Source: Podarcis filfolensis
Taxonomy: Eukaryota
Assembly (NCBI GenBank): GCA_964270895.1
Contig: OZ185439.1
Strand: one strand, 5' to 3'
DNA: 64,000 nt
This document shows, one piece after another, positions 21,101 through 52,600 of this stretch; the stretch's first letter is position 1; each line of letters opens with the position of its first letter. Made by a program: the position numbers and the translations under genes. The notes beneath the pieces were generated by a model. It saw nothing but the letters and a program-made list of their open reading frames with translations, had not been told where the DNA came from and did no database searches.

Positions 21101-22505
21101 GTGCATGCCCCTCAATGCAATCTAGGGCCCTATCTGTCACACTGGAGCAACCCAATCTGACCCAAGCTGATCTGGGTCCAACCCAGCCTGACCCAATATC
21201 TTGTGAATTGCCCTGTGATCTTTGGATGAAGGGCGGTATACAAATTTAAGAAATAATAATAAATAATAATAAGCTTGAAATTTTTTTTGGGGGGGGGCGG
21301 GAACAGTTCTAACTCAAGTTAAATATTTGGCCAGAAGAGGAGAAGGAGAAACTGCCTCCCCCCCCAACAGCATATTTCATTAGGGTACTAAATCAAACAC
21401 ATCAGATTCCCCCCCCCCAAAAAAAAATACCCATAGCAATGCATTCAGAAAAACCCTTGAATTCTTTGCATTCTGGTTTCTTGTTCTTATAAGAGTGCCT
21501 ACCATGAGCTGAACCTATCTATAGGCCTGTGCTGCAAAGAAAAGCTGGATTCACTGGGCTCGTAGCAGATCTAGTATTTATTCTTCTGCCAATGGCAGCT
21601 CTCTGCTTAATGGTGCAAAGATCACCTGGCTTCATGACACACAACAGATGTGATGCTGAAGATGGCTGAAGAGAACAGAAGGACCACATGGAATTCAGTC
21701 CTTGTGATTCTGTCCTCTGGGTCTTGGTGAAGCTGGAAAGTTGTTACTGGGATCTGCTTTTGGAGGGGTGGGGGGAAGCAATGCTTTGACACAATACTCA
21801 GCATTTATTTTTGTATTTGTTAGGTAGCTACAGTTGTGGCAAGACTTTCACAGATCCAACGGGGTCATTTTATCCCACATATTACACTGGTGGTGGAAAC
21901 GTCGTAGAGTGTCTCTGGACAATTGTTTCATATTATAAGATTCCTATAGTGCTAACCCTTGATTATATCAGGTAAGTCCTCCGTTGCTGAAAGCTAGTGT
22001 TTTGTACTGTCAGCATCTCGCTTGTACTTTGGCAATAGGTACCACTGAAGAGGAAATTATTTCGTCATGCTTCCTTTCCTCCTTAATCTTTTTCTTCACT
22101 TTCTGCTTCTCTTTTTCCACACTTACCCCTTTTCATGTTCTCCTGGTTCTTTCATCTTTTCTTTTTCTTTATATGTTTGCTTGTTTTGAATAACTAGAGC
22201 AAAAGGATGCAGAGTTGATATAATACATAAACTGATTGATTTGACATTTTTAAAAAAATACCTTGTGTAAATCATGTATAAGGGCTTTTCACCTGAGCAG
22301 CTTGTTGATGGATCGGGTTCATCTGCAAGGTGTGAGGGAGCTGACACCACCACCCTGTTGTGGGTTACAGGTGTGCCAGTTTAATTTGTTTTTCAAAAAT
22401 TTTCATCATTACTGAAATCACAAAGGAATAAAAGCATGCATATCCTTAAAGCATATATGTGAAAGATTGTATCATCCCTTATATACTCTATCACTGTGCT
22501 CTGCC

Positions 22506-22545
<40 letters not shown>

Positions 22546-25500
22546 ACATTTTCCAGTTTCAGAGTCCATTCCAGTTGTTCTGTTATTTGCAAAGTTAGTA
22601 AAAAATGGCTGGCAATTCCATAAGTGCCGGGGAATCTGGGTCAACTATGGCCTGCATATCTCACTTGGGCTGTCGAAGCTTCTGAGTCTTCATTCACAAA
22701 TTTAATAAAACCAAAGCAAGCTGAATGCAATGTGCCAGATGTTGATTGCCTTGGGAAAGGGTGAGAAATGGAAGTCTTTAAGGTGACCATGTCCTGTGGG
22801 CTCATGCATATTATATTCTAAATAAATAAATGAAGTTTCCAAAATTCCCTACAAAACAGTGCTCATGACTTCTGTGGGAAAATCAATACTATGGCCACAC
22901 TAGGAAGTATAGCTGTCCAGAGCCAGCACTCCTGCTAGAGTTCTGCTGCATATATTTAAAGTAGGAGAGGAATGATGCGCTGGCTCCAGGTCTGGCTCCC
23001 ACTGAGACATTGTGAGATGCATTCCAAAATCTTTCCACCAGAGCCTATTTCTTACCAACCAATGAGACATTACATTAATCAAAATGCTACAATATTTAGT
23101 GCTACAAGGCCTTTATATGTCCTACTTATATGTCCTACTTATCTGGGAGCAGGTCTCAGGGAACTCAAGAGTACCGGTACTTGCTTCCAATTAGCCATGC
23201 ATAGGATTTTGCTGTTGATGTGTTACGACAAAAAATTAACTGAACTCAAGGGGTCACAAACCGCAGGTGGGAGAGGAGACAGAGTTTTTAAAGTTAAGAA
23301 TGTGAGGAGAAAATGAAATCATCAAAATCATATAAATAATAAAATCATTGTCATCGTCAGCTGATACTTTTGAATGCAGGAATTTCTTTGCCTTGTACAG
23401 TATGACTAATGACACTTTTTCCTCCACAGTTTGGACTGTACTCGTGAATACATTCAAATCTATGATGGAATGGTAGATCATTCAGCACTACTTGGGCAAA
23501 TATGCGATGGCCCAAGTCAGGTATTCGTTTCACGTTCAGGCCTCATGAAAGTTTTACTCCACAGAGAGTCCTATCGTGCAGGCTCTGGCTTTTTTGCCTA
23601 TTATGATATAACAGGTAACCCTGGAACTCATACATTTACTTTCCATGCAGCCGAATATTTTTGCTTTTTGTATGCAGGAATAGAATTTTGTAGATCGGAT
23701 TAGAATTTGACATTGTGGGAATTTGCTTCAGGATTACAATAGAGGGGCTTTAACGCAGTAAACAATAGGGTTGTGCAACAGTTCACTAGATTGGCTTGTA
23801 TCTGTACTTGTAATATTGGGAAACAATCTACTCTGCTTCAGAGCCACTCTGTCTTTCCAGTTTGACTTCTTGTTCCGAGTCTGAATTAGACCTGCTTCTC
23901 CCCATTGATTATGATGGGGAATTTAAACATGGCTGAACGTTTTCCCCTTTTCCCCAGGAATGGATGACAGAGAAAACAATGCCTCTCCAGAGAGCATTAA
24001 GCCTGCCAAATTGCAGGCAGTGGAAGGCCTGGTTTTATCCCTACTACAAAACATATGCAGGTTGGATGGGGAGCTGATCTGCGGTCTTACCCTCCACACA
24101 TATGTTCAGTGTCACTGTTTTGATTATCTGAAGAAGGCCTGACTCATCCACAAACTATTTCTGCTCAACCTTTTCAGTGAAATTTTGCCTTTTTTAGTCT
24201 TCCCAGCTCCAGAACTATGCTACTCGTAAAAGCTGCCCAAACCCCTATTTGTTTCCATGGTTTTTCATTTTGTTTCCTCCAGTCTTCCTTCAAATGTTCA
24301 TTTTTTCTTCATAGGGAAAGCAAAAGTGCTAAATTCGCAAATAATTTTTTATTAAAAAAATCAACATTTTCACTGTATATTTTGGAAAGTTGTTTGTTTC
24401 ACTATCCATTTGGATACTTCTTACAATATTATAATGGTTGTCAAGGGACAAGTTGGGATACAATTGGATGCCATTTGGAATCAAGATGGTTGCCACACCA
24501 TGCAAATGTATACTTATTTCAACCACTCATTTTACAATTGCTCCGATACAAGTTTAAAATATAAATGTGGTTTTGATTTTAAAAGAGCAAATATTTTTAA
24601 ATCTAGGTTGAATCTTGACATCTGCGGGACATTATAGCATTAACAATTGCTAGAATGTTGATTGTTTTATAAAATGATGTTTTTTATTTATAGATCTGGC
24701 AACCTCACCAGTCCCTGAATTAACAACAGGTAATGAAATCTGCTCACCTTTTTTTTTAATGTAGGGAATATGAAGGTCCCTGGGCATAACAGTAGGCTTG
24801 GCAGAGTAATGGTCATAGGTAGTAGTCAACTAAATTTTACTGAGAGTATATCCATTTAAATTGAGAGTCCTAACTTAGTCATGTTCATTAATTTCAGTGG
24901 GTCTACTCTGACCAAAATGTAATTAAATGATACCTCATAAATGCTCTAGCATTTGATAATGTTGAGGTAATGAGGTTTTAGCATGGAAGAGAAAATAAAG
25001 ACAGAAACCAAATAAGGAACTATTGGAAATTTAACATTAAGTTATTGAGAATCCTGAAATCCAAACAAGGATAGATAATCTGTTGTAGAAAATATCAGTA
25101 AGAGCAAGGGAGAGAGAATTAATTTGAGCTGGAATCAAGAAGAGAAAGAGAATTCAAAAGGTACGTATTTTTTTTTTCAGACTTAGCTTTGCAAAGCTCT
25201 ATATTGATTTGTTTTGTAATGCTTTGTTCAGCTATTTCCCTAAGTTGTGGAACTAACTGAGTACAGAACTGAGATATACCATTCAACACAGACTAAACTG
25301 TGTTAAATCAACACAGACTTTATTTGGTATTAGGTAAAAAGTCATTGAATATACATTATCTGAACATCACTTACCTGTCCAAATTGGGGTGGTAAATGGG
25401 AGCATAGATAAAAACAGCATACTTTTTTGGCATGCATTTTAAAAACTAAAGGGGGTGAACCTTAATGGAAATGAGTAAGTGAATGAAAGAATGAAAGTTT

Positions 25501-28500
25501 GTTGGAAACAGATGTATTTATTCTTGCTTTGTTGTTGTTGTAAATATTCTTTCATCATGAGGTGAAATCTAATGTTGAATCAGTGCTTTTTTCTAAAAAA
25601 AATGTTTAGGGGTACTCTCATTTTCCTACTCATATTGAAATATCGCCCCTCAATGAGGCCAAACTTAAATTCACAAAATGTTTAGGGGTATGGGTACCCC
25701 TGCGTCCCCCCCCAGAAAAAAAGCACTGTGTTTAATCATGTTCAGGGTAGGTTCATTTATTTCAGTGGAACTACTCTGAATATGACTAATGTTGGATATC
25801 ACCTTCTGATGAGAAGATGAGAGTAAACAGGAACAAAATTAGGACAAAACTTGAAAAATTGTGATATCCTGGTTTATTTTAGTATGTGTAGAGCCAAAAC
25901 ACTGGATCCCAAAGGCCACACATCCCCTGTTTCATATAAGGATATTTACAATTTTCTTCAGAACAGCAGCTAACCTTGGTCAAGAGTCCTATGTTTCTCT
26001 TCAGTGTTCTAAGGTTATTAGAGTCTAAACACACATACGTCTCTGTTGCTTGTCCATTTATGACAACATGCTGGGGTGGTAAAATGCTTGTTATTCAACT
26101 GAGCTTTACTCCACAAATATTGATCAAGGTTGCTTTTTTATCAAATTCTTCTCTCACAGCTCCAGAGTTGACAACCGAACCCGTGTATAGTAAGTTTCCA
26201 ATCTAAATCTTAATTGTTATACTTTGTCCAAAAAGGGTATGAATTAGAGAGAAGCAAGTCTTCAACTGAATAATCAGACATTCAGTTGCAAATCTGTTGC
26301 CTTCTCTCTGTGTTCATGCAGTTAAGAATAATGAATACCCAGTGAAGAGGGCCCTCTTGAAATAGAAAACATCTCTGATCACAACTTGTTATGGTGTAAA
26401 AACACTGCAATCTCTGTTAACTGAAGGGCTTTACAGGCATTTGGACTTATGTCCACCGCCTTTCTCTTCTTCAAGGGAAAACAGAGGCAGCAGGGGTGAT
26501 TTGAGAATAGCCCTCCCCTCAGGCAGTAGCAGGAGCAATGCAGAACAGGGCACCTCAGTCCCAATCTCTCTAGGCCAGCGATGGGACGCCTTTGGTTCTT
26601 CACGTAAAAGTCCTTGACTTATAAATAAATAAATTACTTTTCTGTTCTTCTGTATCTCTTCACTACATTTGCATGCAAAATTCAAGTATAAGATATAATT
26701 TTAACTCTTTTGTGTAACAAGTAGTTCATTTTTTAAAATGAACATAGTAGAATGTGGATATTTAAATTTGCTGACCAATGTTCATCTTTCTTTAGCAACA
26801 ACTCTTCCTCCAGAAACCACTAGTGAGTACCTACCTTTTTGCATGTAATTTTGCCACAGTGAACAGCCAAGGGAATAATGTGATATCGGGCAGAAGATAC
26901 AGCATGGAATTAAAATGCAGTGCCTTCTTACATCCCTTTTATAATAATGGCATCTCAGGACCATCTGAGTAAAATCATGGTTGATGCTCTTTGTTGCTGA
27001 AAGAACGCGAAGCAGGAAGACCAACAGCAGATGGAGCCAGAGCACAGTCATCTAGGCAGCTTCCTAGTTGTCCCCATTCTCCTCCTTGCTCAGCTGTACA
27101 AAGCTAACACTGAGACTAAGAAGGAGGAATCTGACCAGCAGTACCACCTCCTGGACTTGCACATAGGATGGTGGGCAGGCAGGCAGGGGGTGCAGCTGAC
27201 AGCAGAATGAGGTTGGTGGGGCAGTGCCCCATTTGCTTTCACAAATCAGCCTGACCCAAAGGTAGATTAATATTTGTTTTGACACAAAGTAGAAACAGAA
27301 TAGGCTTTAAGCCTTTGAAAAATTGCATTTGCCAACACACACACAACTGAAAGCATGGTCATCTTGCCCTGGGGTGTAAAGTTAACATTTTTGTTCCTTG
27401 CTTTCTGATCATCGCCTTCTGAGAAATCCTATATTTCCAGCCCCCTGAATTGGGTGTTCCCAATGTGCCTAGGTGAAATTTTAGTCCTAGATGCCCGGGG
27501 TCTGAGGGAAGATCTAAAATGCAGTGCTAATGTTGCTGTAGAGGAGATTATCTCTACAATACCTTGCGCATAATGACAACGGAGCCTGGCTCTACAAAAT
27601 GTTCTGTCTGTGTTCTTCAGCGCCCTTTCAGTGTGGTGGCATCCTCTTGGAACCATTTGGATATATCCATGGCCCTTTTTAAAAAATGAACATAGTACAA
27701 TGTGGATATTTAAATTTGCTGACCAATGTTCATCTTTCTTTAGCAACAACTCTTCCTCCAGAAACCACTAGTGAGTACCTACCTTTTTCCATGTACCGGT
27801 AATTTTGCCAAAGTGAACAGCAAAAGGAATAATGTAGTTTCGGGCAGAAGATACAGCATGGAATTAAAACGCAGTCCCTTCTTACATCCTTTATAATAAT
27901 GGCATCTCAGGACCATCTGAGCCAGTGTGGTGTAGTGGTTAAGAGCGGTGGACTCGTAATCTGGAGAACCGGGTTCGCATCTCCGCTCCTCCACATGCAG
28001 CTGCTGGGTGACCTTGGGCTAGTCACACTTCTTTGAAGTCTCTCAGCCCCACTCACCTCACAGAGTGTTTGTTGTGAGGAAGGAAGGGAAAGGAGAATGT
28101 TAGCTGCTTTGAGACTCCTTCGGGTAGTGATAAAGCGGGATATCAAATCCAAATCCATCTGAGTACAATCGTGGGTTTGGTGGTCCACTAAAATATATCC
28201 AGTGTTAGTTACACTGAGTAGGAAACCTTCAGGCCCTTACTACAATGATTGCCTCTTGTGCCCCAGATCCTTTCCCCAAAGATTCTTGGAAATTTTAGCT
28301 TGTTTAGGGTGCTGAGAACTGTTAGGAGGCCCCCATTCCCCTCTCAGAGCTACAGTTGTCAGAGTTCCATGGAGAGAAGGTTTGGTTGTTGAATGTTTGG
28401 CTTAATATCAACACATTCTACCACAATCTGATTGATTCTGTTCTTTCTTACTAGTTCTATCCACAACTGGAGAACCGACCACTATAGTCACGCAGTGTAA

Positions 28501-29065: not shown

Positions 29066-29113
<48 letters not shown>

Positions 29114-32100
29114 AACTGGAAGCAATAGGTATTTTGTACTGAGCTGTATTAGGCAAGGCATAGCAACCTGGCTTTCGGTTACAACTTTGTTCCCCATTTC
29201 TTTTCTTCTAGGAACAAACTACCATCAGCTTTTTAGAAATCTTCCATTTCTATCCTGATGCAGTAGTGCTGAGGCTAGATGCTTCTTGGGTTTGGTGGTC
29301 CACTAAAATATATCCAGTGTTAGTTATACTGAGTAGTATACCTTCAGGCCCTTACTACAAGGATGGCCACTTGTGCCACAGATACTTTCCCCAAAGATTC
29401 TTGGGAATTTTAGCTTGTTAAGGGTGTGGAGAGTTGTTAGGAGGCATCACAACACAGGGTCGGTGCTCTCCTATTGTGCTTGTGGTCCCGTCGTCTTCGA
29501 GCTCTTCAGAAAACCCCCCCGAAAAAACGGCCAGACCACTTCTGCGCTGCTGGTTAGCCATCCCTCAAGGGTACCCCCTTGAGATTTTTGGGGGGCGCAG
29601 TGCCTTTGCGACTCCCACAAGCCCCTGTGTTGTTCGAAAATCCCCGACGAGACTTTCCACGCTCCCTTTCTGTCTGCGATGGAAACTGGAAGTCCAATCT
29701 AAATCTAAATCTTTATTGTTATACTTTGTCCAAAAAGGGTATGAATTAGAGAGAAGCAAGTCTTCAACTGAATAATCAGACATTCAGTTGCAAATCTGTT
29801 GCCTTCTCTCTGTGTTCATGCAGTTAAGAATAATGAATACCCAGTGAAGAGGGCCCTCTTGAAATAGAAAACATCTCTGATCACAACTTGTTATGGTGTA
29901 AAAACACTGCAATCTCTGTTAACTGAAGGGCTTTACAGGCATTTGGACTTATGTCCACCGCCTTTCTCTTCTTCAAGGGAAGACAGAGGCAGCAGGGGTG
30001 ATTTGCGAATAGCCCTTCCCTCAGGCTGTAGCAGGAGCAATGCAAAACAGGGCACCTCAGTCCCAATCTCTCTAGGCCAGCGATGGGACGCCTTTGGTTC
30101 TTCACTTAAAAGTCCTTGACTTATAAATAAATAAATTACTTTTCTGTTCTTCTGTATCTCTTCACTACATTTGCATGCAGAATTCAAGTATAAGATATAA
30201 TTTTAACTCTTTTGTGTAACAAGTAGTTCATTTTTTAAAATGAACATAGTAGAATGTGGATATTTAAATTTGCTGACCAATGTTCATCTTTCTTTAGCAA
30301 CAACTCTTCCTCCAGAAACCACTAGTGAGTACCTACCTTTTTGCATGTAATTTTGCCACAGTGAACAGCCAAGGGAATAATGTGGTATCGGGCAGAAGAT
30401 ACAGCATGGAATTAAAATGCAGTGCCTTCTTACATCCCTTATAACAATGGCATCTCAGGACCATCTGAGTACAATCGTGGTTGATGCTCTTTGGTGCTGA
30501 AAGAATGCGAAGCAGGAAGACCAACAGCAGATGGAGCCAGAGCACAGTCATCTAGGCAGCTTCCTAGTTGTCCCCATTCTCCTCCTTGCTCAGCTGTACA
30601 AAGCCAACACTGAGAAGGAGGAGGAAACTGACCAGCAGTGCCACCTCCTGGACTTGCACATAGGATGGTGGGCAGGCAGGCAGGGGGTGCGGCTGACAGC
30701 AGAATGAGGTTGGTGGGGCAGTGCCCCATTTGCTTTCACAAATCAGCCTGACCCAAAGGTAGATTAATATTTGTTTTGACACAAAGTAGAAACAGAATAG
30801 GCTTTAAGCCTTTGAAAAATTGCATATGCAAACACACACACAACTGAAAGCATGGTCATCTTGCACTGGGATGTAAAGTTAACATTTTTGTTCCTTGCTT
30901 TCTTTGTTCTCTGAACAAATGATCATCGCCTTCTGAGAAATCCTATATTTCCAGCCCCCTGAATTGGGTGTTCCCAATGTGCCTAGGTGAAATTTTAGTC
31001 CTAGATGCCCGGGGTCTGAGGGAAGATCTAAAATGCAGTGCTAATGTTGCTATAGAGGAGATTATCTCTACAATACCTTGCGCATAATGACAACGGAGCC
31101 TGGCTCTACAAAATGTTCTGTCTGTGTTCTTCAGCGCCCTTTCAGTGTGGTGGCATCCTCTCGGAACCATATGGATATATCTATGGCCCTGATTATCCTG
31201 GAAATGGCAGGCTGGTGCAGTGTGCCTGGGAAATTAAAGCTCCAATGTTTTACAATAGAGTTGTTTTACAGTTTAAAACAGTTGGTCGGAAGTAAGTATT
31301 TGCATTATCGTAGTCCTTTCTGTACATTTGACTGATTAATTTCTAAATCTGTTTTTGCAACCAGTAAAATGCTCCTAAACAACATGGAGTTTTGTGCCAT
31401 CTTAAAGACCGACACATTTAAAGACAAACAGCATTTAATATTCTTTAGTCTTTAACGGCCTTTGGGCAAGACCTTTTACACAGAACCTTCATTGTTTTTT
31501 GCTGCAGCAGCCTTACATGGCTTCCCCTGTGGATATGGTTAAAAATGTTTGAGTCCAAGATAATTTTTGATGTCTAGAACAATCAAGTGAGGTAGCCAGA
31601 ATCACCCAGGACCAGATACGGTCGTACCTTGGAAGTCGAACGGAATCCATTCCAGAAGTCCGTTTGACTTCCAAAACGTTCGAAAACCAAAGCGTGGCTT
31701 CTGATTTGAATTCATGGAAGCCCTATCGGACATTTGGCTTCCAAAAATAGTTCACAAACTGGAATAGTCACTTCTGGGTTTGATACTACCAGGAGACAAA
31801 ACATTCGGTAACTAAACTGTTCCACTTCTAAGGTATGATTGTACATAAGAAGGCAACGGGCAAGATACAATTCAGAGTTTTTCAATCCAGTCCCATATAC
31901 GTATATACGTGATATAGTTCACACAAATGCCTACAATGAGCCCCAGTGAATAAGGGAATATTGAATGGAGAATAGAGGGGGAGAATGGAATGCCTCTCTC
32001 ACACACATCCAGGGCTTTTAATTACTGTGAAGAATATGTATTACTTAGTATTTTTGTTTTTATAATACTTATTCTGTGACATATAATATACATTGCATTA

Positions 32101-33294
32101 CATGTACTCAACAACTTGAATCTAATTAGATAGTATTCATCACAGCTTGGTAACTTAAAGCTTTCTCCCAATGCCTGTCTACATCCATATAACTTAGAAA
32201 ACATTGCTAAAATCTGACTGTAAATGTGAGGCTGACCCCATATTTTTTCAAATACTCAGATTTATGGAGAATGATTGAGTGTATTTCCAATATTTGGTAA
32301 TCAATTTTTTGCCAGTCTCTCAGCATAATCCAACATGCCATGTCTTGAGGAATTGCTAGTTGCGAGGAATAAAAATAGAGTTTTTACGTGGCTCCATTAA
32401 TATGAATAATAAATTTCTAAATTTGCATCTACAGTATGAACTGCCGCACAGACTATATTGCCGTCTATGATGGTGGCCTGGGCTCATCAAGACAACTTGG
32501 AAGAATTTGCTTGGCTACCCGTCATGTATTTATATCCACTTCAGACACAATGACTGTTGTGTTGTACAGAAATTCCTTTAATGCAGGACCATCATTTACT
32601 GCTTATTACTATACTACGCCACAAGGTAAAATGTGATTTTTAAAGTCACCTATTAATCAACAAATATATTCAATCTGCTGCTTTCATGAAGGGATCCTTA
32701 TGCTTCTTTAAAAATTGCATAAGAATATATAAAAAGAGTCCTGGCTAATAAGACTGAATATCCTCGTAGCCCATCATTTTGGGAAGTCCAGAAACAGGAC
32801 TTCAAACCTGTTGCATTTACTGGGTCTGTTCACACGACGGTTTATTGTGGACCTGTGCTCACACATGCATGTTTTGCACAGCATCTACATGGCACAGTCC
32901 TCGTCAAAATGCAGTCCCATATTATTTTCCTAATTAATCCGGATTGGGTGGGTGTGGAACTGGTAAATGGTAAATGTGATAACGCTAAATGTGTACTAAA
33001 TGGTAAAAAAATATGAAACGGCATGTTGATAAGGACATCAGGGCTGGTTTGGGAGGTGACTGGGATGGCACTGGATTCTTATGGTTGGGAAGGAGCTGAA
33101 TGTTCCCTAGTGTGGGTAAATGTTGCTTGAGTAAAGAAGCTTCTGCACCCTGGTCTGCCAGTTTTTCGGCCTTTTGATTTCATTTGGCCAAGTACTGGGG
33201 ACACTTCTGTGGCAGTGAAGTAGAGGGATTCATCACTTGATCTCTCTCTCCAACCCCTCTTTCCACCCTTGGAGAGGGAGATCCAATGCCATCA

Positions 33295-33341
<47 letters not shown>

Positions 33342-35769: not shown

Positions 35770-35811
<42 letters not shown>

Positions 35812-38800: not shown

Positions 38801-41800
38801 GTCTGAGGGAAGAGCTAAAATGCAGTGCTAATGTTGCTGTAGAGGAGATTATCTCTACCATACCGTGCGTATAATTACAATTGAGCCTGGCTCTACAAAA
38901 TGTTCTGTCTGTGTTCTTCAGCGCCCTTTCAGTGTGGTGGCATCCTCTCGGAACCTTTGGATATATCCATGGCCCTTTTTTAAAATGAACATAGTACAAT
39001 GTGGATATTTAAATTTGCTGACCAATGTTCATCTTTCTTTAGCAACAACTCTTCCTCCAGAAACCACTAGTGAGTACCTATCTTTTTCCATGTACCGGTA
39101 ATTTTGCCACAGTGAACAGCAAAAGGAATAATGTAGTTTCGGGCAGAAGATACAGCATGGAATTAAAACGCAGTGCCTTCTTACATCCTTTATAATAATG
39201 GCATCTCAGGACCATCTGAGCAAGTGTGGTGTAGTGGTTAAGAGCGGTGGACTCGTAATATGGTGAACCGGGTTCGCGTCTCCACTCTTCCACATGCAGC
39301 TGCTGGGTGACCTTGGGCTAGTCACACTTCTTTGAAGTCTCTTAGCCCCACTCACCTCACAGAGTGTTTGTTGTGATGAAGGAAGGGAAAGGAGAATGTT
39401 AGCTGCTTTGAGACTCCTTTGGGGAGTGATAAAGCGGGATATCAAATCCAAATCCAGAAGCGGCTTAATCATGCTGGCCACATGACCCGGAAGCTGTCTG
39501 CAGACAAACACCAGCTCCCTTAGGCTACAGAGTGAGATGAGCACGCAAACCAGGAGTCGTCCACGACTGGACCTAATGGTCAGGGGTACCTTTGCCTTTT
39601 GCTGAGCTGTATTAGGCATGGCATAGCAACCTGGATTTGGGTTACAGCTTTATTCCCCATTTCCTTTCTTCGAGGGACAAACTACCATCAGCTTTTTAGA
39701 AATCTTCCATTTCTATCCTGATGCAGTAGTGCTGAGGCTAGATGCTTCTTGGGTTTGGTGGTCCACTAAAATATATCCAGTGTTAGTTATACTGAGTAGT
39801 ATACCTTCAGGCCCTTACTACAAGGATGGCCACTTGTTCCACAGATACTTTCCCCAATGATTCTTGGGAATTTTGGCTTGTTAAGGGTGTGGAGAATTGT
39901 TAGGAGACCCTCATCGCCCTCTCAAAGATACAGTTGTCAGAGTTCCATGGAGAGAAGGTCTGGTTGTTCAATGTTTGGCTTAATATCAACACATTCTACC
40001 ACAATCTGATCGATTCTGTTCTTTTTTACTAGTTCTATCCACAACTGGAGAACCGACCACTATAGTCACACAGTGTAAGTCTGAATGTAGAAACTTCTTT
40101 TGTGACCACACAGGGAAATAAGACACACAGATTGGGTGAACTGAGCCACATTTCATTTAACACTGCAAATCTGCAGAAGGGAACCAAGGTCAACCTCAGA
40201 CATCTCCCTCTGCTCTCATGGAGGGAGATCTCATTATTTCTGTGGCCCACAGGACGTTTCCCCCAAGGGGCACAGGGTTGCTGGGTTCATTGGGTAAAAA
40301 TACTGATGAATATTAATAGATAATAATGACATGCCTATTTCTTACCAATGCATATCAATGTTTCTCTTTCTTTGTGAACAGCTCCTTCTACACCTCCTGG
40401 TGAGTCCTACTTTTTTTATTCCAAGTCTGAATCTTTCTCAATAGGCATGAAGTATGAAAGATACATAGTGTGGAATCAATTAAGAATTTGGGGGGGGGGA
40501 GCTCTTAGGTGTGGTTGCTAGTACATATTTGAAAGTCTGAAAGTATTAGTGATATATGTTCCAAAGGTAACTGAGTCATTATTTCAAAACTAGGAAGAAA
40601 TTGAACCGACTTTTGAAAAACAGTTTGGAAAATTGAATGGAAATTGTGTGTTTGTGTGTGTGTGTGTAAGAAACTGGAAGCAATAGGTATTTTGTACTGA
40701 GCTGTATTAGGCACGGCATAGCAACCTGGCTTTCGGTTACAACTTTGTTCCCCATTTCTTTTCTTCTAGGAACAAACTACCATCAGCTTTTTAGAAATCT
40801 TCCATTTCTATCCTGATGCAGTAGTGCTGAGGCTAGATGCTTCTTGGGTTTGGTGGTCCACTAAAATATATCCAGTGTTAGTTATACTGAGTAGTATACC
40901 TTCAGGCCCTTACTACAAGGATGGCCACTTGTGCCACAGATCCTTTCCCCAAAGATTCTTGGGAATTTTAGCTTGTTAAGGGTGTGGAGAGTTGTTAGGA
41001 GGCATCGCAACACAGGGTCGGTGCTCTCCTATTGCGCTTGTGATCCTGTCGTCTTCGAGCTCTTCAGAAAAAACCCCCCGAAAAAACGGCCAGACCACTT
41101 CTGCGCTGCCGGTTAGCCATCCCTCAAGGGTACCCCCTTGAGATTTTTGGGGGGCGCAGTGCCTTTGCGACTCCCACAAGCCCCTGTGTTGTTCGAAAAT
41201 CCCCGACGAGACTTTCCACGCTCCCTTTTTGTCCGCGACGGAAACTGGAAGTCCAATCTAAATCTAAATCTTAATTGTTATACTTTGTACAAAAAGGGTA
41301 TGAATTAGAGAGAAGCAAGTCTTCAACTGAATAATCAGACATTCAGTTGCAAATCTGTTGCCTTCTCTCTGTGTTCATGCAGTTAAGAATAATGAATACG
41401 CAGTGAAGAGGGCCCTCTTGAAATAGAAAACATCTCTGATCACAATTTGTTATGGTGTAAAAACACTGCTATCTCTGTTAACTGAAGGGCTTTACAGGCA
41501 TTTGGACTTATGTCCATCGCCTTTCTCTTCTGCAAGGGAAAACAGAGGCAGCAGGGGTGATTTGAGAATAGCCCTCCCCTCAGGCAGTAGCAGGAGCAAT
41601 GCAAAACAGGGCACCTCAGTCCCAATCTCTCTAGGCCAGCGATGGGACGCCCTTGGTTCTTCACTTAAAAGTCCTTGACTTATAAATAAATAAATTACTT
41701 TTCTGTTCTTCTGTATCTCTTCACTACATTTGCATGCAAAATTCAAGTATAAGATATAATTTTAACTCTTTTGTGTAACAAGTAGTTCATTTTTTAAAAT

Positions 41801-44800
41801 GAACATAGTAGAATGTGGATATTTAAATTTGCTGACCAATGTTCATCTTTCTTTAGCAACAACTCTTCCTCCAGAAACCACTAGTGAGTACCTACCTTTT
41901 TGCATGTAATTTTGCCACAGTGAACAGCCAAGGGAATAATGTGGTATTGGGCAGAAGATACAGCATGGAATTAAATTGCAGTGCCTTCTTACATCCCTTA
42001 TAATAATGGCATCTCAGGACCATCTGAGTACAATTGTGGTTGATGCTCTTTGGTGCTGAAAGAACGCGAAGCAGGAAGACCAACAGCAGATGGAGCCAGA
42101 GCACAGTCATCTAGGCAGCTTCCTAGTTGTCCCCATTCTCCTCCTTGCTCAGCTGTACAAAGCCAACACTGAGAAGGAGGAGGAAACTGACTAGCAGTGC
42201 CACCTCCTGGACTTGCACATAGGATGGTGGGCAGGCAGGCAGGGGGTGCAGCTGACAGCAGAATGAGGTTGGTGGGGCAGTGCCCCATTTGCTTTCACAA
42301 ATCAGCCTGACCCAAAGGTAGATTAATATTTGTTTTGACACAAAGTAGAAACAGAATAGGCTTTAAGCCTTTGAAAAATTGCATATGCAAACACACAAAC
42401 AACTGAAAGCATGGTCACCTTGCACTGGGATGTAAAGTTAACATTTTTGTTCCTTGCTTTCTGATCATCGCCTTCTGAGAAATCCTATATTTCCAGCCCC
42501 CTGAATTGGGTGTTCCCAATGTGCCTAGGTGAAATTTTAGTCCTAGATGCCTGGGGTCTGAGGGAAGAGCTAAAATGCAGTGCTAATGTTGCTGTAGAGG
42601 AGATTATCTCTACCATACCGTGCGTATAATTACAATTGAGCCTGGCTCTACAAAATGTTCTGTCTGTGTTCTTCAGCGCCCTTTCAGTGTGGTGGCATCC
42701 TCTCGGAACCTTTGGATATATCCATGGCCCTTTTTTAAAATGAACATAGTACAATGTGGATATTTAAATTTGCTGACCAATGTTCATCTTTCTTTAGCAA
42801 CAACTCTTCCTCCAGAAACCACTAGTGAGTACCTATCTTTTTCCATGTACCGGTAATTTTGCCACAGTGAACAGCAAAAGGAATAATGTAGTTTCGGGCA
42901 GAAGATACAGCATGGAATTAAAACGCAGTGCCTTCTTACATCCTTTATAATAATGGCATCTCAGGACCATCTGAGCAAGTGTGGTGTAGTGGTTAAGAGC
43001 GGTGGACTCGTAATATGGTGAACCGGGTTCGCGTCTCCACTCTTCCACATGCAGCTGCTGGGTGACCTTGGGCTAGTCACACTTCTTTGAAGTCTCTTAG
43101 CCCCACTCACCTCACAGAGTGTTTGTTGTGATGAAGGAAGGGAAAGGAGAATGTTAGCTGCTTTGAGACTCCTTTGGGGAGTGATAAAGCGGGATATCAA
43201 ATCCAAATCCAGAAGCGGCTTAATCATGCTGGCCACATGACCCGGAAGCTGTCTGCAGACAAACACCAGCTCCCTTAGGCTACAGAGTGAGATGAGCACG
43301 CAAACCAGGAGTCGTCCACGACTGGACCTAATGGTCAGGGGTACCTTTGCCTTTTGCTGAGCTGTATTAGGCATGGCATAGCAACCTGGATTTGGGTTAC
43401 AGCTTTATTCCCCATTTCCTTTCTTCGAGGGACAAACTACCATCAGCTTTTTAGAAATCTTCCATTTCTATCCTGATGCAGTAGTGCTGAGGCTAGATGC
43501 TTCTTGGGTTTGGTGGTCCACTAAAATATATCCAGTGTTAGTTATACTGAGTAGTATACCTTCAGGCCCTTACTACAAGGATGGCCACTTGTTCCACAGA
43601 TACTTTCCCCAATGATTCTTGGGAATTTTGGCTTGTTAAGGGTGTGGAGAATTGTTAGGAGACCCTCATCGCCCTCTCAAAGATACAGTTGTCAGAGTTC
43701 CATGGAGAGAAGGTCTGGTTGTTCAATGTTTGGCTTAATATCAACACATTCTACCACAATCTGATCGATTCTGTTCTTTTTTACTAGTTCTATCCACAAC
43801 TGGAGAACCGACCACTATAGTCACACAGTGTAAGTCTGAATGTAGAAACTTCTTTTGTGACCACACAGGGAAATAAGACACACAGATTGGGTGAACTGAG
43901 CCACATTTCATTTAACACTGCAAATCTGCAGAAGGGAACCAAGGTCAACCTCAGACATCTCCCTCTGCTCTCATGGAGGGAGATCTCATTATTTCTGTGG
44001 CCCACAGGACGTTTCCCCCAAGGGGCACAGGGTTGCTGGGTTCATTGGGTAAAAATACTGATGAATATTAATAGATAATAATGACATGCCTATTTCTTAC
44101 CAATGCATATCAATGTTTCTCTTTCTTTGTGAACAGCTCCTTCTACACCTCCTGGTGAGTCCTACTTTTTTTATTCCAAGTCTGAATCTTTCTCAATAGG
44201 CATGAAGTATGAAAGATACATAGTGTGGAATCAATTAAGAATTTGGGGGGGGGAGCTCTTAGGTGTGGTTGCTAGTACATATTTGAAAGTCTGAAAGTAT
44301 TAGTGATATATGTTCCAAAGGTAACTGAGTCATTATTTCAAAACTAGGAAGAAATTGAACCGACTTTTGAAAAACAGTTTGGAAAATTGAATGGAAATTG
44401 TGTGTTTGTGTGTGTGTGTGTAAGAAACTGGAAGCAATAGGTATTTTGTACTGAGCTGTATTAGGCATGGCATAGCAACCTGGCTTTTGGTTACAACTTT
44501 GTTCCCTATTTATTTTCTTCTAGGAACAAACTACCATCAGCTTTTTAGAAATCTTCCATTTCTATCCTGATGCAGTAGTGCTGAGGCTAGATGCTTCTTG
44601 GGTTTGGTGGTCCACTAAAATATATCCAGTGTTAGTTATACTGAGTAGTATACCTTCAGGCCCTTACTACAAGGATTGCCACTTGTTCCACAGATACTTT
44701 CCCCAAAGATTCTTGGGAATTTTAGCTTGTTAAGGGTGTGGAGAATTGTTAGGAGGCCCTCATCGCCCTCTCAAAGCTACAGTTGTCAGAGTTCCATGGA

Positions 44801-46586
44801 GAGAAGGTCTGGTTGTTCAATGTTTAGCTTAATATTAACACATTCTACCACAATCTGATTGATTCTGTTCTTTCTTACTAGTTCTATCCACAACTGGAGA
44901 ACCGACCACTATAGTCACACAGTGTAAGTCTGCATGTAGAAACCTCTTTTGTGACCACACAGGGAAATAAGACACACAGATTGGGTGAACTGAGCCACAT
45001 TTAATTTAACACTGCAAATCTGCAGAAGGGAACCAAGGTCAACCTCAGACATCTCCCTCTGCTCTCACGTAGGGAGATCTGATTATTTCTGTGGCCCACA
45101 GGACGTTTCCCCCAAGGGGCACAGGGTTGCTGGCTTCATTGGGTAAAAATACTGATGAATATTAACAGATAATAATGACATGCCTATTTCTTACCAATGC
45201 ATATCAATGTTTCTCTTTCTTTGTGAACAGCTCCTTCTACACCTCCTGGTGAGTCCTACTTTTTTTATTCCAAGTCTGAATCTTTCTCAATAGGCATGAA
45301 GTATGAAAGATACATAGTGTGGAATCAATTAAGAATTGGGGGGGGTGGAGCTCTTAGGTGTAGTTGCTAGTACATATTTGAAAGTTTGAAAGCATTCGTG
45401 ATATATGTTCCAAAGGTAACTGAGTCATTATTTCAAAACAAGGAAGAAATTGAACCAACTTTTGAAAAACAGTTTGGAAAATTGAATGGAAGTTGTGTGT
45501 GTGTAAGTAACTGGAAGCAATAGATATCTTGTCGTGAGCTGTATTAGGCACGGCATAGCAACCTAGCTTTTGGTTACAACTTTGTTTCCCATTTCTTTTC
45601 TTCTAGGAACAAACTACCATCAGCTTTTTAGAAATCTTCCATTTCTATCCTGATGCAGTAGTGCTGAGGCTAGATGCTTCTTGGGTTTGGTGGTCCACTA
45701 AAATATATCCAGTGTTAGTTATACTGAGTAGTATACCTTCAGGCCCTTACTACAAGGATGGCCACTTGTTCCACAGATACTTTCCCCAATGATTCTTGGG
45801 AATTTTGGCTTGTTAAGGGTGTGGAGAATTGTTAGGAGACCCTCATCGCCCTCTCAAAGCTACAGTTGTCAGAGTTCCATGGAGAGAAGGTCTGGTTGTT
45901 CAATGTTTGGCTTAATATCAACACATTCTACCACAATCTGATCGATTCTGTTCTTTTTTACTAGTTCTATCCACAACTGGAGAACCGACCACTATAGTCA
46001 CACAGTGTAAGTCTGAATGTAGAAACTTCTTTTGTGGCCACACAGGGAAATAAGACACACAGATTGGGTGAACTGAGCCACATTTCATTTAACACTGCAA
46101 ATCTGCAGAAGGGAACCAAGGTCAACCTCAGACATCTCCCTCTGCTCTCATGGAGGGAGATCTCATTATTTCTGTGGCCCACAGGACGTTTCCCCCAAGG
46201 GGCACAGGGTTGCTGGGTTCATTGGGTAAAAATACTGATGAATATTAATAGATAATAATGACATGCCTATTTCTTACCAATGCATATCAATGTTTCTCTT
46301 TCTTTGTGAACAGCTCCTTCTACACCTCCTGGTGAGTCCTACTTTTTTTATTCCAAGTCTGAATCTTTCTCAATAGGCATGAAGTATGAAAGATACATAG
46401 TGTGGAATCAATTAAGAATTGGGGGGGGGGGAGCTCTTAGGTGTGGTTGCTAGTACATATTTGAAAGTCTGAAAGTATTAGTGATATATGTTCCAAAGGT
46501 AACTGAGTCATTATTTCAAAACAAGGAAGAAATTGAACCAACTTTTGAAAAAGAGTTTGGAAAATTGAATGGAAATTTTATTTGTC

Positions 46587-46632
<46 letters not shown>

Positions 46633-49600
46633 TGTGTAAGTAACTGGAAGCGATAGATATCTTGTAGTGAGCTGTATTAGGCATGGCATAGCAACCTGGC
46701 TTTTGGTTACAACTTTGTTCCCCATTTCTTTTCTTCTAGGAACAAACTACCATCAGCTTTTTAGAAATCTTCCATTTCTATCCTGATGCAGTAGTGCTGA
46801 GGCTAGATGCTTCTTGGGTTTGGTGGTCCACTAAAATATATCCAGTGTTAGTTATACTGAGTAGTATACCTTCAGGCCCTTACTACAAGGATGGCCACTT
46901 GTTCCACAGATACTTTCCCCAAAGATTCTTGGGAATTTTAGCTTGTTAAGGGTGTGGAGAATTGTTAGGAGGCCCTCATCGCCCTCTCAAAGCTACAGTT
47001 GTCAGAGTTCCATGGAGAGAAGGTCTGGTTGTTCAATGTTTAGCTTAATATTAACACATTCTACCACAATCTGATCGATTCTGTTCTTTCTTACTAGTTC
47101 AGTCCACAACTGGAGAACTGACCACTAAAGTCATAGAGCGTAAGTCGGCATGTAGAAACTTCTTTTGTGACCACACCGGGAAATAAGACACACACATTGA
47201 GTGAACTGGGCCACATTTAATTTAACACTACAAATCTACAGAAGGGAACCAAGGTCAACCTCAGACATCTCCCTCTGCTCTGACAGAGGGAGATCTGATT
47301 ATTTCTGTGGCCCACAAGGAAGTTCCCTCAAGGGGCACAGGGTTGCTGGGTTCATTGGGTAAAAATACTGATGAATATTAACAGATAATAGTGGCATGTC
47401 TATTACTTACCAATGCTTATCAATGTTCCTCTTTCTTTTTGAACAGCTCCTACTCCTATTGGTGAGTCCTACTTTTTCATTACAAGGCTGAATCTTTCTC
47501 AATAGGCATGAAGTATGAAAGATAAATAGTGGGAAATTGATTACGAATGGGGGGGTGGAGCTCTTAGGTGTTATTGCTAGTGCATATTTGAAAGTTTGAA
47601 AGCATTCGTGATATATGTTCCAATGGTAACTGAGTCATTATTTCAAAACAAAGAAGAAATTGAACAGACTTTTGAATAAAGATTTTGGAAAATTGAATGG
47701 AATGTAAGTAGAATGTAAGCATAAGTCTGCATGCTTGAAACATCTTTTGTAACCACATAGGGAAATAAGATTCACAGACTGGGCGGAATGAGCCACATTT
47801 AATTTAACACAACAGATCTGCTGAAGGGAACCAAAGTGCACAATACTATCTTCAAATAGCAAACAGGGTGAACCGACTCTGACAAGAATAAGAGGCATCA
47901 TTTCACCTTAAGCCCCATAACTTAGATGGGGTTTTACAGGTTGGCCTCAAAGGTACTTCTTATTCTGTCAGTGGGTCTCACAACTCAGAAGGCAAGGCAA
48001 AGAAAAGTACCTAAGGGTGCTCACCAAACCTTAACTACCCGATAACTAATTAATTAACCTATTTAACAACAAAGTGATTTACAACCAACGAAACAGACAA
48101 GCAACTCTCACCCATGAGATGAAGTAAAACCAAGAGGAAAGAGAAATGCATTAAAAACATCCTGCCCACAAATATATTAGTAATTTAATAGGGGCAAGGA
48201 TATTGGAGGCCTCCAGCTTCAACCTAAAAGGGCCAATTATTTGCTTATTAATAACAGAAGGAGAGAGTTAATGCAATCAAGTTGGGGGAGGGAGGGAGGA
48301 AGATTTTAAATTAAGATGGATTTCATTTCACATTTCTCTGTACAAAATTCTATTTTGGCTTACATGCACAAAATATTGTGTTTTCTAGTATGTGGTGGCT
48401 CTCTCTACTTTCCAAATGGATCTTTCTCTGGACCATATTATCCTGGAAACGGTGCCATTATACAGTGTAGCTGGGAAATTCAAGTGAGCCCTGATAGACA
48501 AATAGTTCTCCAGTTTTCTTATATTAGGTAAGTGTAAGGAACTGAATGTTTTCCCATTTTCCACAGGCACCTGCACATGATGTTAATTCATGGTTTTGTC
48601 ATTACCTGAAGACTTTAATAGGTTATGGGTGGCTGTTCTTCTCTGTGCTTGAAAAGATAGATGTGCTGAGGTGTTTGCCTGAATTTGTAAGCACCAAACT
48701 ATGTAGGGAGGTCAGAATGTTTAAGCAAGCCCTGCCCTTAACCTGGCTGTCTGCTTTGCTCCTTCCCTCTCAGCCTCCAACTTTCTCTGTGTCACACAGG
48801 GAGGGTCTGCATAGAATTTCTACTTGTATTCACTTGAACACAAGCAGAACTCTCTGCATGAGGGACCCTGATTCTATCCAACAAACTTAGCATGTGATAG
48901 CCATCAGATTAAATCCTGCTAACTGGTCATGCGGTTCTGCCCTACACGAGATGAAATCCCATACAAATTAAAAACCTTCCAAAGAAAATACATCATAAAC
49001 ACATTTTTATTACAAACTCTACAAGTGGTAGATATTGGCCCTTTTCTGAAAACAAAAGGGTCCACTTTTTAATGCTTTCTTAGGAAATATGAAAGACAGG
49101 CCCTTTCACTGAGGCATTGAAAGATGAGTAAAAAAGACAAGTATTTTGTGAATCTTGTCTTTAAAGCAAATTATGCTGTTCCAGCCAGAGGAGACATCAT
49201 TCAATAGCAAAGTGGTTAAATTGTATGCATATATATTTGAATTCTTTGAATAAATTTGTAAATTTGAATATTTGAATTCTGGGCATTTTCAGGAGCAAGG
49301 CTGAGAAAGACCTATAACTGTGACACTGGAAAGCCATTGCCAGGTGGAGCAGACTGTACTGGACGTAATGGGCCAGAGGTCTGACATGACCTTGATATGT
49401 ACATAGGCATGCCACTCTTTTAGGTTGAGCTAATCTGGGATACATCTGAGAGCCTCATCAGCCACCTAGCTTATCACTCAGCTGACATTTACTGAAACAT
49501 CTCCATAGTATCATAGATGTAGGGTGGGGTTCTCACAGGCAGAACCAATCATAACATTACTTTAATATGTTCGGAATTCAGGTCAGCTCCACTGAATCTA

Positions 49601-52600
49601 TGTATTTACCTTTATATTTTGGCATATGTGTCACCAAAGAGAGAATCAAAGGGTGCTTGAATGTTCACTTGAATGTTCAATGTGGTATCTTTGCTCCTCA
49701 TATGTACATGTGATTTGCAGTGTCCAAACATTGTCATTGTCATCAAAATGCCAGCCCATATCTGCCCCCTCCTGGATTTATTATTTCCAGGGAAACCCTG
49801 ATAAGTAAAGAACGACAACGCTATTGCCAGTGAATCATTTGTGATAGTGACCCATTATGAAATTGAACCCCCATATATAAGCAACCTATGTAACATTTCT
49901 TTACTTAATGTGAAAATCTAATGTATGAAATGATGGCATAATTTTATACACAAAGAGTGACTTGCTGACCTACCTTTATACAGTCTGGACTGCAATAAAG
50001 AATATATTGTGATCTTCGATGGGTACCCGTATGCCTCCACTATTCTTGGAAGAACTTGCTCTGGCATCTATCTCAACTATACCTACATATCAACTTCCAA
50101 CACAATGACTATTCTGCTGCACAGAGATTCATATTACTCAGGAGATGGGTTTTATGCTTCTTACTATTCTATTCCACTAAGTAAGAGTTATCTATTTATC
50201 TAGTTCTAGGACATTTCTACTATCTGTTGTGTTAGATTAATGTTGTTCTGGTTTGAGGATGCAATGTAAGCTGAAAATCAACATATGTCTTGGGCAGAGA
50301 TGGGGAACTTGTGGTTCTCCAGATGGTCTCCAACTCCCATCAATCCCTGCCAGCATAGGCAAAGATCAGGGATGATGTGAGTTGTGATCTAGCAACATTG
50401 GGTGGGCCACAGGCTCCCCACCCTTTGTCTAGGATCATACCAATATACAAACCCATAGGCTGGTCGGATTATGGCACAGTTTCTGTGACCTATCCAGAGA
50501 TGAATAGGATATTTACTTTGCTTAACTTTTCCTGTTTGCATGAATGGTATCAGTTTGCAGTTGGATAGATCAAAGGTATTTTTCCTATGAGGGACCAAAG
50601 TAAGATCTGAATGCACAATTTTCTGCCATGTTAAAATTTCTAGCCCCTTGACATGCACACTTTGAAGAATAAGGCAATGCTTCACTTTAGCAACAACTGA
50701 AGCACCATCTCGCCACTGACACCTTTTTTTGTTAATGTTGTAGGAGAATATTTTATTCCACCAGGCTTTTTGTATGTTTTAAGCATCCTGATTTACTTGC
50801 ATTTCACTTTAAATGTTCTCCCTTTAATTGTATTGATATTTTTTTGCTGTATAAATAAGGTGTGTGCACGCGCGCGCACACACACACACACACACTGGTG
50901 ACTTTTGTCAACGAAGAATAGCTGCCATATGTTCCTAGGTTATTGGATATATTACTGCTAGGATCTTAACATCAGTGTAATAGTACTTTTATTGTACTAT
51001 TTGTTTACCTAAATAGGAACAGAAACAACTACTGAACCACCTCTCAATGAATCAACAGCTGGTAAGACCTTGTTCTTTTTCTTTAATGTCATTCATTTTA
51101 AATGCTCTCCCTTTAATTGTATTCTTGTATGATTAATGTGTGTGTGTTTGTGTGTGTGTGCGTGCACACACACACTGATGACCAATCAATGAAAAATATC
51201 TGCAATATATTACTAGGTTACTGGATAGATGACTGCTGGGATCTCGATATCTTCAGTGGAATATCTGTACTATTTATTTTGGTTCCTTTAATAGACTTAA
51301 CATTTGAATCAAGTGCTAGTGAAGCAACAACTGATAAGATGTTTTTCCTTTTCTTCTGTGTCTTTTGTTAGGTAATAAGGCAAATGGTTAAACATGACAC
51401 TCAAAGAAACTAGATGCTTCTTTTCACAGTTGTATGATTTAGGCACCTCTGAGCTTGCAGAGGATTGCATGCTCAAGATCCAGGGAAGCTGTTCTTCACC
51501 AAAGATATATCTGAAACCACTTGCTATCTTCTCTCTGTTGTGGAAAAGAAGCAGTAGATTTTACTCCTCAGGGAATGGCATTAGATTACACAGTAGAGGC
51601 ACTCTGAAAAGAACATTTTTCATATACTTAAATCCCAACAAAACGGAGTACAAGCAACACTGATTGTTTGTATAATGGTCTTTGTCATGGTGGAAGGGTG
51701 TAGCAGGTGAGGGCACAGAACTCAATGTTGTGACTACAATTTCCCAACTTTTTACCATTTAAATGCTAATTAGACACAAATTGATCTCCCTTTTGTTTTG
51801 TTTTTCATTTGTACAGCTCTTCCTACAAGTTTAGCACCAGTTCCTGCAAGAAGTAAGTTCCAATTTCTCCCTAAAACATGCATGTGAAAATTGCAGATTT
51901 TGCTGATTTGGGTTGCCTAGCTGAAAAGTCTGTGTGTTCAAAGGAAACATTGAAACTGAGTATTCCAAATACTTCAAATTTCTGAAAACGTGGTAAAGCC
52001 GTTCCATGGCAGCTTCTTTATGAGCTCAAACAAGCCCCCGCTTGCCTGACATATCATTCACCAAGGTTGCCCCTACTCATAAGTAAATGTAAAAAACATT
52101 ACAGTATTTAATATGGTTTCTATGTGCCCCATTCAGCGCTCTCGTGTTCCGGAGAATACATGCTTGCACGCATCAGCAGGGACTATCTTGGGTTGCTGGG
52201 CTACAATGCAAGCGAAGTATCCCTGAATACTTCAGACCCCTTCTGCACACCTCAGATTACTCAAGACTATGTGGTCTTCGAGGTACCATATAGTGGGTGT
52301 GGCACAGTAAGAAAGGTAAGACAATGCGTTCTTAAAAATATTGTCAGTATCCAATGCACTTGTTCTGTTTGTGCAAGGATTTTTGCATGTGCTATGGAAC
52401 TTCTCCGCTATCCTCTCCCTGCACATCTCACACCCTCCTCAAATCTATTTCAGGGTTGTTGGAAACCCCAGAAGAGATTTAAGGGGTTGTGGTCAGAGGA
52501 GGGGGGAAAGTTCTGCTGCACAAGCTTAAATCCTTGCAATGATGGAACTAGTTACTCAGTACCACATTGGGTACTGCACATTATCTGTTATCTGGTTCGT

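Follow-up and report, generated by a model that had tools for sequence, protein, structure and literature searches.

A lizard CUB-ZP membrane glycoprotein gene of the DMBT1 neighbourhood and its possible kinship with the spermadhesins

The window analysed here, a 64-kb stretch of Podarcis filfolensis contig OZ185439.1 that is free of N runs, carries the 3' end of a DMBT1-type gene (gene 1, from the start of the window to 7669) and, directly downstream and on the same strand, a second gene (gene 2) that starts 5.5 kb after it and is the subject of this report. Gene 2 spans 13215-56613 on the plus strand and encodes a signal peptide, three CUB domains each followed by a Thr/Pro linker, a ZP module, an RRKR furin site and a transmembrane (TM) helix. 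In pig, cattle and horse, spermadhesins are major proteins of the seminal plasma; these single-CUB lectins have long been regarded as an ungulate family standing by itself. An initial annotation of this DNA had proposed that all three CUB domains of gene 2 look spermadhesin-like and that the gene may be a membrane-anchored relative or ancestral form of that family. We consider it likely, with a probability of roughly two in three, that gene 2 is the lacertid member of a group of amniote DMBT1-like CUB-ZP membrane glycoproteins with CUB domains of a distinct subtype, termed type A below, and that the spermadhesins are an offshoot of this subtype.

With the largest ZP exon as the query, a library of representative proteins returned the Podarcis lilfordi orthologue (P0002, 833 residues), 97% identical. 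The gene model was obtained by placing P0002 on the window by tblastn and reading the splice flanks. The features of gene 2, each with its basis, are as follows.

13215-13260 (+): exon 1, with the start codon and the signal peptide MDQTVIFLLVLLSAS, ending in a phase-1 donor (P0002 tblastn, splice flanks)
20919-20948 (+): 30-nt exon VKSATTVAK, phase 1 to 1 (100% match to P0002 residues 16-26, AG/GT flanks)
21824-21971 (+): first half of CUB1, with Cys1, Cys2 and CLWTIV (exon borders, Pfam, P0002)
23430-23614 (+): second half of CUB1, S-LDCTREY to LHRES (exon borders, P0002, Pfam CUB E 1e-6)
24694-24729 (+): linker-1 exon, Thr/Pro-rich, DLATSPVPELTT (P0002 alignment and splice flanks, no RNA basis)
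26160-26189 and 26796-26822 (+): other linker-1 exons (P0002 alignment and splice flanks, no RNA basis)
31135-31291 (+): first half of CUB2, PFQCGGIL to GPDYPGNG (exon borders, Pfam, P0002)
32435-32625 (+): second half of CUB2, N-MNCRTDY to LYRNS (exon borders, Pfam, P0002)
34058-34138 (+): linker-2 exon with three ETTTEHILQ-type repeats (P0002, splice flanks)
34252-34296 (+): next linker-2 exon (P0002, splice flanks)
48389-48527 (+): first half of CUB3, CGGSL to GPYYPGNG (exon borders, Pfam, P0002, RNA joint to 49984)
49984-50180 (+): second half of CUB3, S-LDCNKEY to LHRDS (exon borders, Pfam, P0002, RNA contig)
51017-51061 (+): linker-3 exon (RNA joints, splice flanks)
51817-51852 (+): second linker-3 exon (RNA joints, splice flanks)
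52137-52315 (+): ZP-N exon (Pfam ZP-N E 7e-9, RNA joints)
53504-53895 (+): ZP exon with the end of ZP-N and the start of ZP-C (Pfam Zona_pellucida E 6e-13, 97% identical to P0002)
54661-54944 (+): ZP-C exon, which contains RRKR (Pfam)
54848-54859 (+): the consensus furin site RRKR, followed by the hydrophobic patch VDVVVGPVKL (sequence reading)
56465-56613 (+): last exon, with the TM helix at about 56512-56574, a short basic tail and the stop codon at 56611-56613 (P0002)

Spliced RNA contigs from related lizard species (Logan) contain the joints 48527/49984, 50180/51017, 51061/51817, 51852/52137 and 52315/53504, indicating that gene 2 is expressed as RNA and that its splicing follows the model, at least over the 3' half. 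The exon VLSTTGEPTTIVTQ has several copies between 28.4 and 47 kb, any one of which may be the copy in use. ZP proteins are usually released at a site of this kind, RRKR with a hydrophobic patch after it, and with its three CUB domains, linkers, ZP module, RRKR and TM helix the gene is, as had been proposed, both membrane-anchored and multi-domain.

The motifs on which the initial annotation relied are real. In a six-frame scan of the window all those cited for gene 2 and gene 1 were located, with the exception of a contiguous NMNCRTDY in CUB2, which exists only after splicing across the joint 31291/32435, where the split codon AA/T encodes Asn. The outer limits given for the CUB region, 21824 and 50180, are exact exon ends.

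23428-23451 (+): SLDCTREY (CUB1)
49982-50005 (+): SLDCNKEY (CUB3)
23557-23571 (+): LHRES (CUB1)
32562-32576 (+): LYRNS (CUB2)
50117-50131 (+): LHRDS (CUB3)
48430-48453 (+): GPYYPGNG (CUB3)
820-852: the gene 1 counterpart, an 11-residue segment of the first CUB half
2012-2029: FHSDHS of gene 1

The scan thereby verified the positions of LHRES, LYRNS and LHRDS in gene 2, set against FHSDHS in gene 1. The shortened first-half loop, described as GPYYPGNG, is literal in CUB3 only, since CUB2 has GPDYPGNG and CUB1 YPTYYTGGG. The first Ser of SLDC in CUB1 and CUB3 is likewise a split codon, AG/T, at the joints 21971/23430 and 48527/49984. A phase-2 intron divides each gene 2 CUB, with the split codon encoding the first residue of the second half, and each exon pair is recognised by Pfam as the two halves of one CUB.

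Orthologues of gene 2, already predicted in related species under the name 'DMBT1-like', are present in Zootoca, Pogona, Hemicordylus, several snakes, turtles and the marsupial Dromiciops (P0024, 586 residues). In turtles and Dromiciops the layout is a short-loop CUB (CUB-A), a canonical CUB (CUB-B), a ZP module and a TM helix, and the Pogona and snake orthologues have an additional SRCR domain. The lacertid layout has three type-A CUBs and neither SRCR nor CUB-B: the SRCR-bearing Pogona orthologue (P0008), used as a tblastn query, had no SRCR match in the window, and SRCR is also absent from the P. lilfordi and Zootoca orthologues.

To place the three CUBs, 199 non-identical CUB domains were compared, namely those of all the retrieved proteins and the four of the window. 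CUB1, CUB2 and CUB3 fall in one clade of 36 (FastTree, support 0.93), this being type A, together with all the squamate counterparts, turtle CUB-A, Dromiciops CUB-A, one CUB of a colugo 'DMBT1' model and one of a further mammal-like model. In a thinned set of 104 CUBs, the 23 retained type-A domains (23/23) stay together with no intruder (IQ-TREE, ultrafast bootstrap (UFBoot) 99-100), and their sister group includes turtle CUB-B.

The clade has a recognisable signature. An Arg replaces Ser/Thr before the third position of the Ca2+ site in all 36 type-A domains vs 4 of 163 other CUBs, and the second position is Glu in 31/36 rather than the Asp seen in 149/163 of the others. Where the other CUBs have the canonical Glu (134 of the 163), type A has an Asp or Asn that immediately precedes Cys3. 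The Cys2-Cys3 spacing is 22-24 residues in 33 of the 36, against a mode of 27 in the 163 other DMBT1-family CUBs. Chance does not account for these features, which are conserved across 36 squamate, turtle and mammalian domains. The gene 2 CUBs are copies of one distinct amniote CUB subtype. CUB1 and CUB3 have the short second-half loop claimed for all three (23 residues), but CUB2, with 26, does not really have it; the lacertid CUB2 group is the exception in spacing and keeps Asp at the second Ca-site position.

A canonical Ca2+ site (Glu, C-x-x-D and S-D-x-S at standard spacing) is present in none of the gene 2 CUBs, which have a four-residue deletion after the first position. Judged from the alignments, the site in type A is remodelled: this deletion follows the Glu position, Glu stands for the second Asp, and the third acidic position is preceded by an invariant Arg. 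At these positions CUB1 has D/E/E, CUB2 N/D/N and CUB3 D/E/D, so the reported absence of L-E before the Cys is right in that Glu is absent from all three; an acidic residue is missing there from CUB2 only, CUB1 and CUB3 having Asp (MAFFT alignment). It could thus be argued that CUB1 and CUB3 bind Ca2+ through a retained acidic triad, as canonical Ca-dependent ligand sites, and that only CUB2 is Ca-independent. Their three acidic residues are compatible with residual Ca2+ binding, and across type A Asp lies at the Glu position in 26/36, Glu at the second position in 31/36 and Asp or Glu at the third in 23/36. We nevertheless find this doubtful, given that the four-residue deletion falls exactly at the first ligand, that the invariant Arg stands beside the third, that the second YP motif of the first half is gone and that the spermadhesins of known structure, which share the pattern, are described as Ca-independent. 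Type-A CUBs would more probably bind glycans or polyanions without a canonical Ca2+ site, the invariant Arg possibly taking the place of the ion.

The kinship of type A with spermadhesins was approached by phmmer against all PDB chains, CUB-B, DMBT1 and CUZD1 domains serving as controls. Single-domain scores are listed in the order aSFP/PSP-I/PSP-II.

Dromiciops CUB-A: 75/75/73 bits; best other single CUB 37 (TSG-6), best single cubilin domain 36
Colugo CUB-A: 57/49/72 bits; best other single CUB 25
Lizard CUB3: 50/40/51 bits; best other single CUB 34
Lizard CUB1: 35/32/43 bits; best other single CUB 31
Lizard CUB2: 42/31/39 bits; best other single CUB 33-41
Control, Dromiciops CUB-B: 34/30/23 bits; TSG-6 64
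Control, last CUB of Pogona DMBT1 (gene-1 type): 43/25/33 bits; TSG-6 60
Control, both CUBs of snake CUZD1: 28/16/21 bits; best other single CUB 58

Canonical DMBT1, CUB-B and CUZD1 CUBs thus reach 16-43 bits to spermadhesins, vs 73-75 for the marsupial type-A domain, which aligns to aSFP, PSP-I and PSP-II with no gaps across the Cys2-Cys3 loop. The L-x-C-x-K-E pattern that the initial annotation had given for spermadhesins is indeed seen in the three solved chains (LNCNKE in aSFP, LTCGKE in PSP-I, LACGKE in PSP-II). All three also have the Arg before the third position, and the Glu is found in aSFP and PSP-II by alignment and in PSP-I by sequence. Their Cys2-Cys3 segment is about 23 residues, a value estimated from aligned coordinates and the PSP-II sequence. 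In the lizard protein the combined C-x-K-E/Arg feature is represented in CUB3 by CNKE and HRDS and in CUB1 by CTRE and HRES, while CUB2, with CRTD and YRNS, has the Arg only.

Structure comparison agrees for the marsupial domain. With an AlphaFold model of Dromiciops CUB-A (predicted local distance difference test (pLDDT) 91) as the query, Foldseek ranks AQN-1, pig AWN, PSP-I and horse AWN first to fourth in Swiss-Prot, AQN-1 and both AWN being 45-46% identical to it and PSP-I 35%. The fifth is a mouse 'putative DMBT1-like protein' (Q8BZE1 residues 270-380, 40% identical), ranks 6-8 are bovine spermadhesin-1, a human 137-residue CUB protein (A0A494C103, 39%) and PSP-II, and DMBT1 CUBs appear from rank 9 with 34-36% identity. 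In the ESM Atlas the top feature cluster of the same domain is 'AQN-1-like', and lizard CUB3 returned generic CUB clusters only. A word-indexed homologue search yielded one Podarcis fragment for lizard CUB3 and no match for marsupial CUB-A. Among those tested, mammalian type-A CUBs are on this comparison the closest multi-domain relatives of spermadhesins.

Several results weigh against this link, however, above all on the lizard side. In local phmmer comparisons lizard CUB3 scores 79-86 bits to DMBT1-family CUBs vs 40-51 to spermadhesins; even Dromiciops CUB-A reaches 75-85 bits with canonical DMBT1-family CUBs, and it is 48% identical to the gene 1 CUB. A model of lizard CUB3 (pLDDT 93) retrieves DMBT1 CUBs first from Swiss-Prot by Foldseek (34-40% identity), with AWN at ranks 22-23 (33-34%), and aSFP is at rank 10 when the PDB is searched; with spermadhesins, CUB1 and CUB2 outscore the DMBT1 control by just a few bits. 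Cys2-Cys3 loops of 23 residues have also arisen independently in DMBT1 CUBs of Anolis (P0059) and Pogona (P0038) that keep all the canonical Ca residues (T-E-C, Y-D-Y, S-D-S), so that loop length alone is not diagnostic of type A. Finally, the link is drawn from synteny, from scores of sequence pairs and from residues and indels in common, rather than from a tree with spermadhesins in it. Most of these observations would suit a scenario of convergence or shared plesiomorphy, in which gene 2 is a lineage-specific DMBT1 paralogue, spermadhesins stem from another DMBT1-family CUB, and the short loop, C-x-x-E and R-D-S either arose independently or are a general trait of the DMBT1 locus. We judge it unlikely, in view of the gap between 73-75 and 16-43 bits, the ranking of spermadhesins over DMBT1 for marsupial CUB-A, the clade that unites lizard and mammalian type-A CUBs with UFBoot 99-100, and the presence of the invariant Arg in three solved spermadhesins and of the Glu in two (aSFP, PSP-II). 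Descent of spermadhesins from type A remains the reading that we prefer, and the asymmetry of the scores, taken with the score triplets and shared residues, would fit a long, fast spermadhesin branch attached to mammalian type A.

The initial claims are accordingly to be narrowed. The three CUBs do lie in one clade whose mammalian members match spermadhesins best, but CUB2 resembles them weakly, having neither the short loop nor C-x-K-E. The proposed relationship holds for mammalian type A, for which spermadhesins are the best PDB and Swiss-Prot matches, whereas the lizard CUBs taken alone are nearer to DMBT1 CUBs. Clustering with DMBT1 or CUZD1 CUBs had been named as a check: in the tree type A is separate from the canonical CUBs of both, although the raw lizard scores favour DMBT1. 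The spermadhesins themselves (AQN-1, AQN-3, AWN, PSP-I, PSP-II, aSFP/SPADH1, Z13) share with gene 2 a locus beside DMBT1, but each is a single secreted CUB of about 110-135 residues without ZP module, TM helix or mucin linkers, so gene 2, with its three CUBs, is not one of them. Their identity to the lizard CUBs is only about 30-34%, and they have a further four-residue deletion in the first CUB half and carry a motif set that lizard CUB2 lacks.

Gene 1 is the CUB-ZP-TM 3' end of a DMBT1-type gene, with best matches to Anolis and Pogona DMBT1, and comprises the following exons.

772-920 and 1867-2086: CUB
2469-2636, 3467-3880 and 6054-6323: ZP exons
end at 7666: TM exon

The Cys2-Cys3 loop of its CUB is rich in Cys and, at 29 residues, unusually long; an Ala is aligned at the canonical Glu position, so that Glu is absent there too. 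In cattle, the genes listed for a BTA26 marker in a genome-wide association table run DMBT1, SPADH2, SPADH1, FAM24A, PSTK, ACADSB, IKZF5 (PMC11758604), and one flank of human CUZD1 is given as LOC124900290, DMBT1L1, SPADH1 in a preprint on marsupial gene loss (bioRxiv 10.1101/2025.03.27.645633). The two gene orders agree with the map position near DMBT1 that had been proposed for spermadhesins, and the slot of gene 2 beside DMBT1 corresponds to the SPADH position in cattle and human. The human protein A0A494C103 may be the product of the SPADH1 named in this thylacine preprint.

In Dromiciops the gene-2 orthologue is followed by a gene on the opposite strand that encodes a DUF5520 protein, a family that includes human C10orf120 from the same interval. 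No DUF5520 neighbour was found downstream of gene 2 by tblastx in the window, the part from 57 to 64 kb of which has no match to known families.

Two known genes come closest to gene 2 in architecture. With DMBT1 and DMBT1-like proteins (DMBT1L1, mouse Q8BZE1) it shares the ZP module, with both ZP-N and ZP-C, the consensus furin site and the C-terminal TM helix, as well as an adjacent genomic position, and its CUBs are part of the DMBT1-family radiation; it differs in having three CUB-mucin repeats, all CUBs being of type A, and no SRCR exon or canonical Ca-site CUB. CUZD1 has in common with gene 2 a signal peptide, CUBs, a ZP module, a TM helix and the chromosomal neighbourhood, and going by the name under which UniRef lists the P. 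lilfordi protein, gene 2 would be its lizard orthologue. Beyond that similar CUB, ZP and TM layout little speaks for this assignment, which we regard as highly improbable. Snakes have, in addition to their gene-2 orthologue, a separate 600-residue CUZD1 (P0061/P0174), one Notechis scaffold carrying both genes, and CUZD1 CUBs fall outside the type-A clade, CUB2 being canonical and CUB1 divergent in another way than in gene 2. Snake CUZD1 CUBs reach only 16-28 bits to spermadhesins, the CUZD1 ZP exon is about 43% identical vs 66-97% for true gene 2 orthologues, and the NCBI name for these is DMBT1-like. The existence of a distinct snake CUZD1 with CUBs outside type A led us to discard this identity.

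How these genes came about may be pictured as follows. Type A would have been the N-terminal CUB of an ancestral protein made of CUB-A, CUB-B, ZP module and TM helix, an arrangement that turtles and a marsupial would have retained, while lacertids would have multiplied CUB-A and lost CUB-B and SRCR. Spermadhesins would most likely be a fast-evolving, stand-alone offshoot of a type-A CUB at the DMBT1 locus. More specifically, we lean slightly towards a history in which an old amniote gene for a membrane CUB-ZP protein beside DMBT1, of the DMBT1L1 type, gave rise to spermadhesins through the two exons of its N-terminal type-A CUB; its ancestral, membrane-anchored form would survive in lizards, turtles and marsupials, and in lacertids the CUB would have been triplicated on a mucin stalk. 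The lizard gene may in that sense stand for the ancestral form of spermadhesins, but would be a membrane-anchored cousin of older architecture, not itself a spermadhesin. Its product is predicted to be a type I membrane precursor, which cleavage at RRKR probably releases, as in other ZP proteins. ZP-driven polymerisation may then build a matrix, extracellular or mucosal, in which the CUBs are exposed, the three of which the Thr/Pro linkers, probably O-glycosylated, would hold off the membrane or filament.

In the literature searched we found no paper on the origin of spermadhesins; nor did that literature, which lacked the central 2005 article on how spermadhesin genes evolved, describe a separate amniote-wide CUB subtype and its tie to them. 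If the scenario is true, a CUB-ZP gene of reptiles, turtles and marsupials would be a concrete parent gene for the spermadhesins and an outgroup for dating the loss of Ca2+ dependence. The gene 2 protein would offer a tractable non-mammalian system in which to look for the original ligand of type-A CUBs, if the subtype is the same. In annotation, the type-A signature (Arg, Glu, short loop) separates these domains from the canonical CUBs of DMBT1 and CUZD1, with which they are now lumped as 'DMBT1-like'.

A few further observations concern the protein models and the introns. The Cynocephalus volans 'DMBT1' (P0145 residues 1-270), source of the colugo domain, starts with SRCR and a type-A CUB, in the order seen in the Pogona gene-2 orthologue; the annotation may have fused DMBT1 with a DMBT1L1-type gene in this model, or else the type-A CUB may truly survive in a placental. 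A CUB at residues 664-773 of P0132 was noted together with it.

The introns between CUB1, CUB2 and CUB3 (26200-47700) are full of recent segmental copies, 90-97% identical in a blastn self-comparison: the segment 26200-27676 equals 29702-31190, the segment 28169-31190 is repeated at 35991-38976 and 39747-42731, and shorter units, each about 1.1 kb long, are found repeatedly between 43.5 and 47.7 kb. Tandem Repeats Finder found no repeats in the gene 2 introns, where the units exceed 500 bp. Linker exons are duplicated within the intronic copies, which also contain, in truncated form, the first 56 nt of the exon for the first half of CUB2, for example at 27614-27709 (with a stop), 38915-38956 and 42670-42711.

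In intron 1, about 0.8 kb past the signal exon, the segment 14000-15600 has a G+C content of 0.51 vs 0.41 for the window and long stop-free frames on the plus strand; a CpG island and a repeat are both conceivable. A Podarcis muralis UniProt entry (P0173, 101 residues, 'CUB domain-containing protein') takes its first 28 residues from the CUB3 intron (49121-49204, 100% match), continues with the second half of CUB3 and runs on into the next intron, and is probably a mis-predicted fragment.

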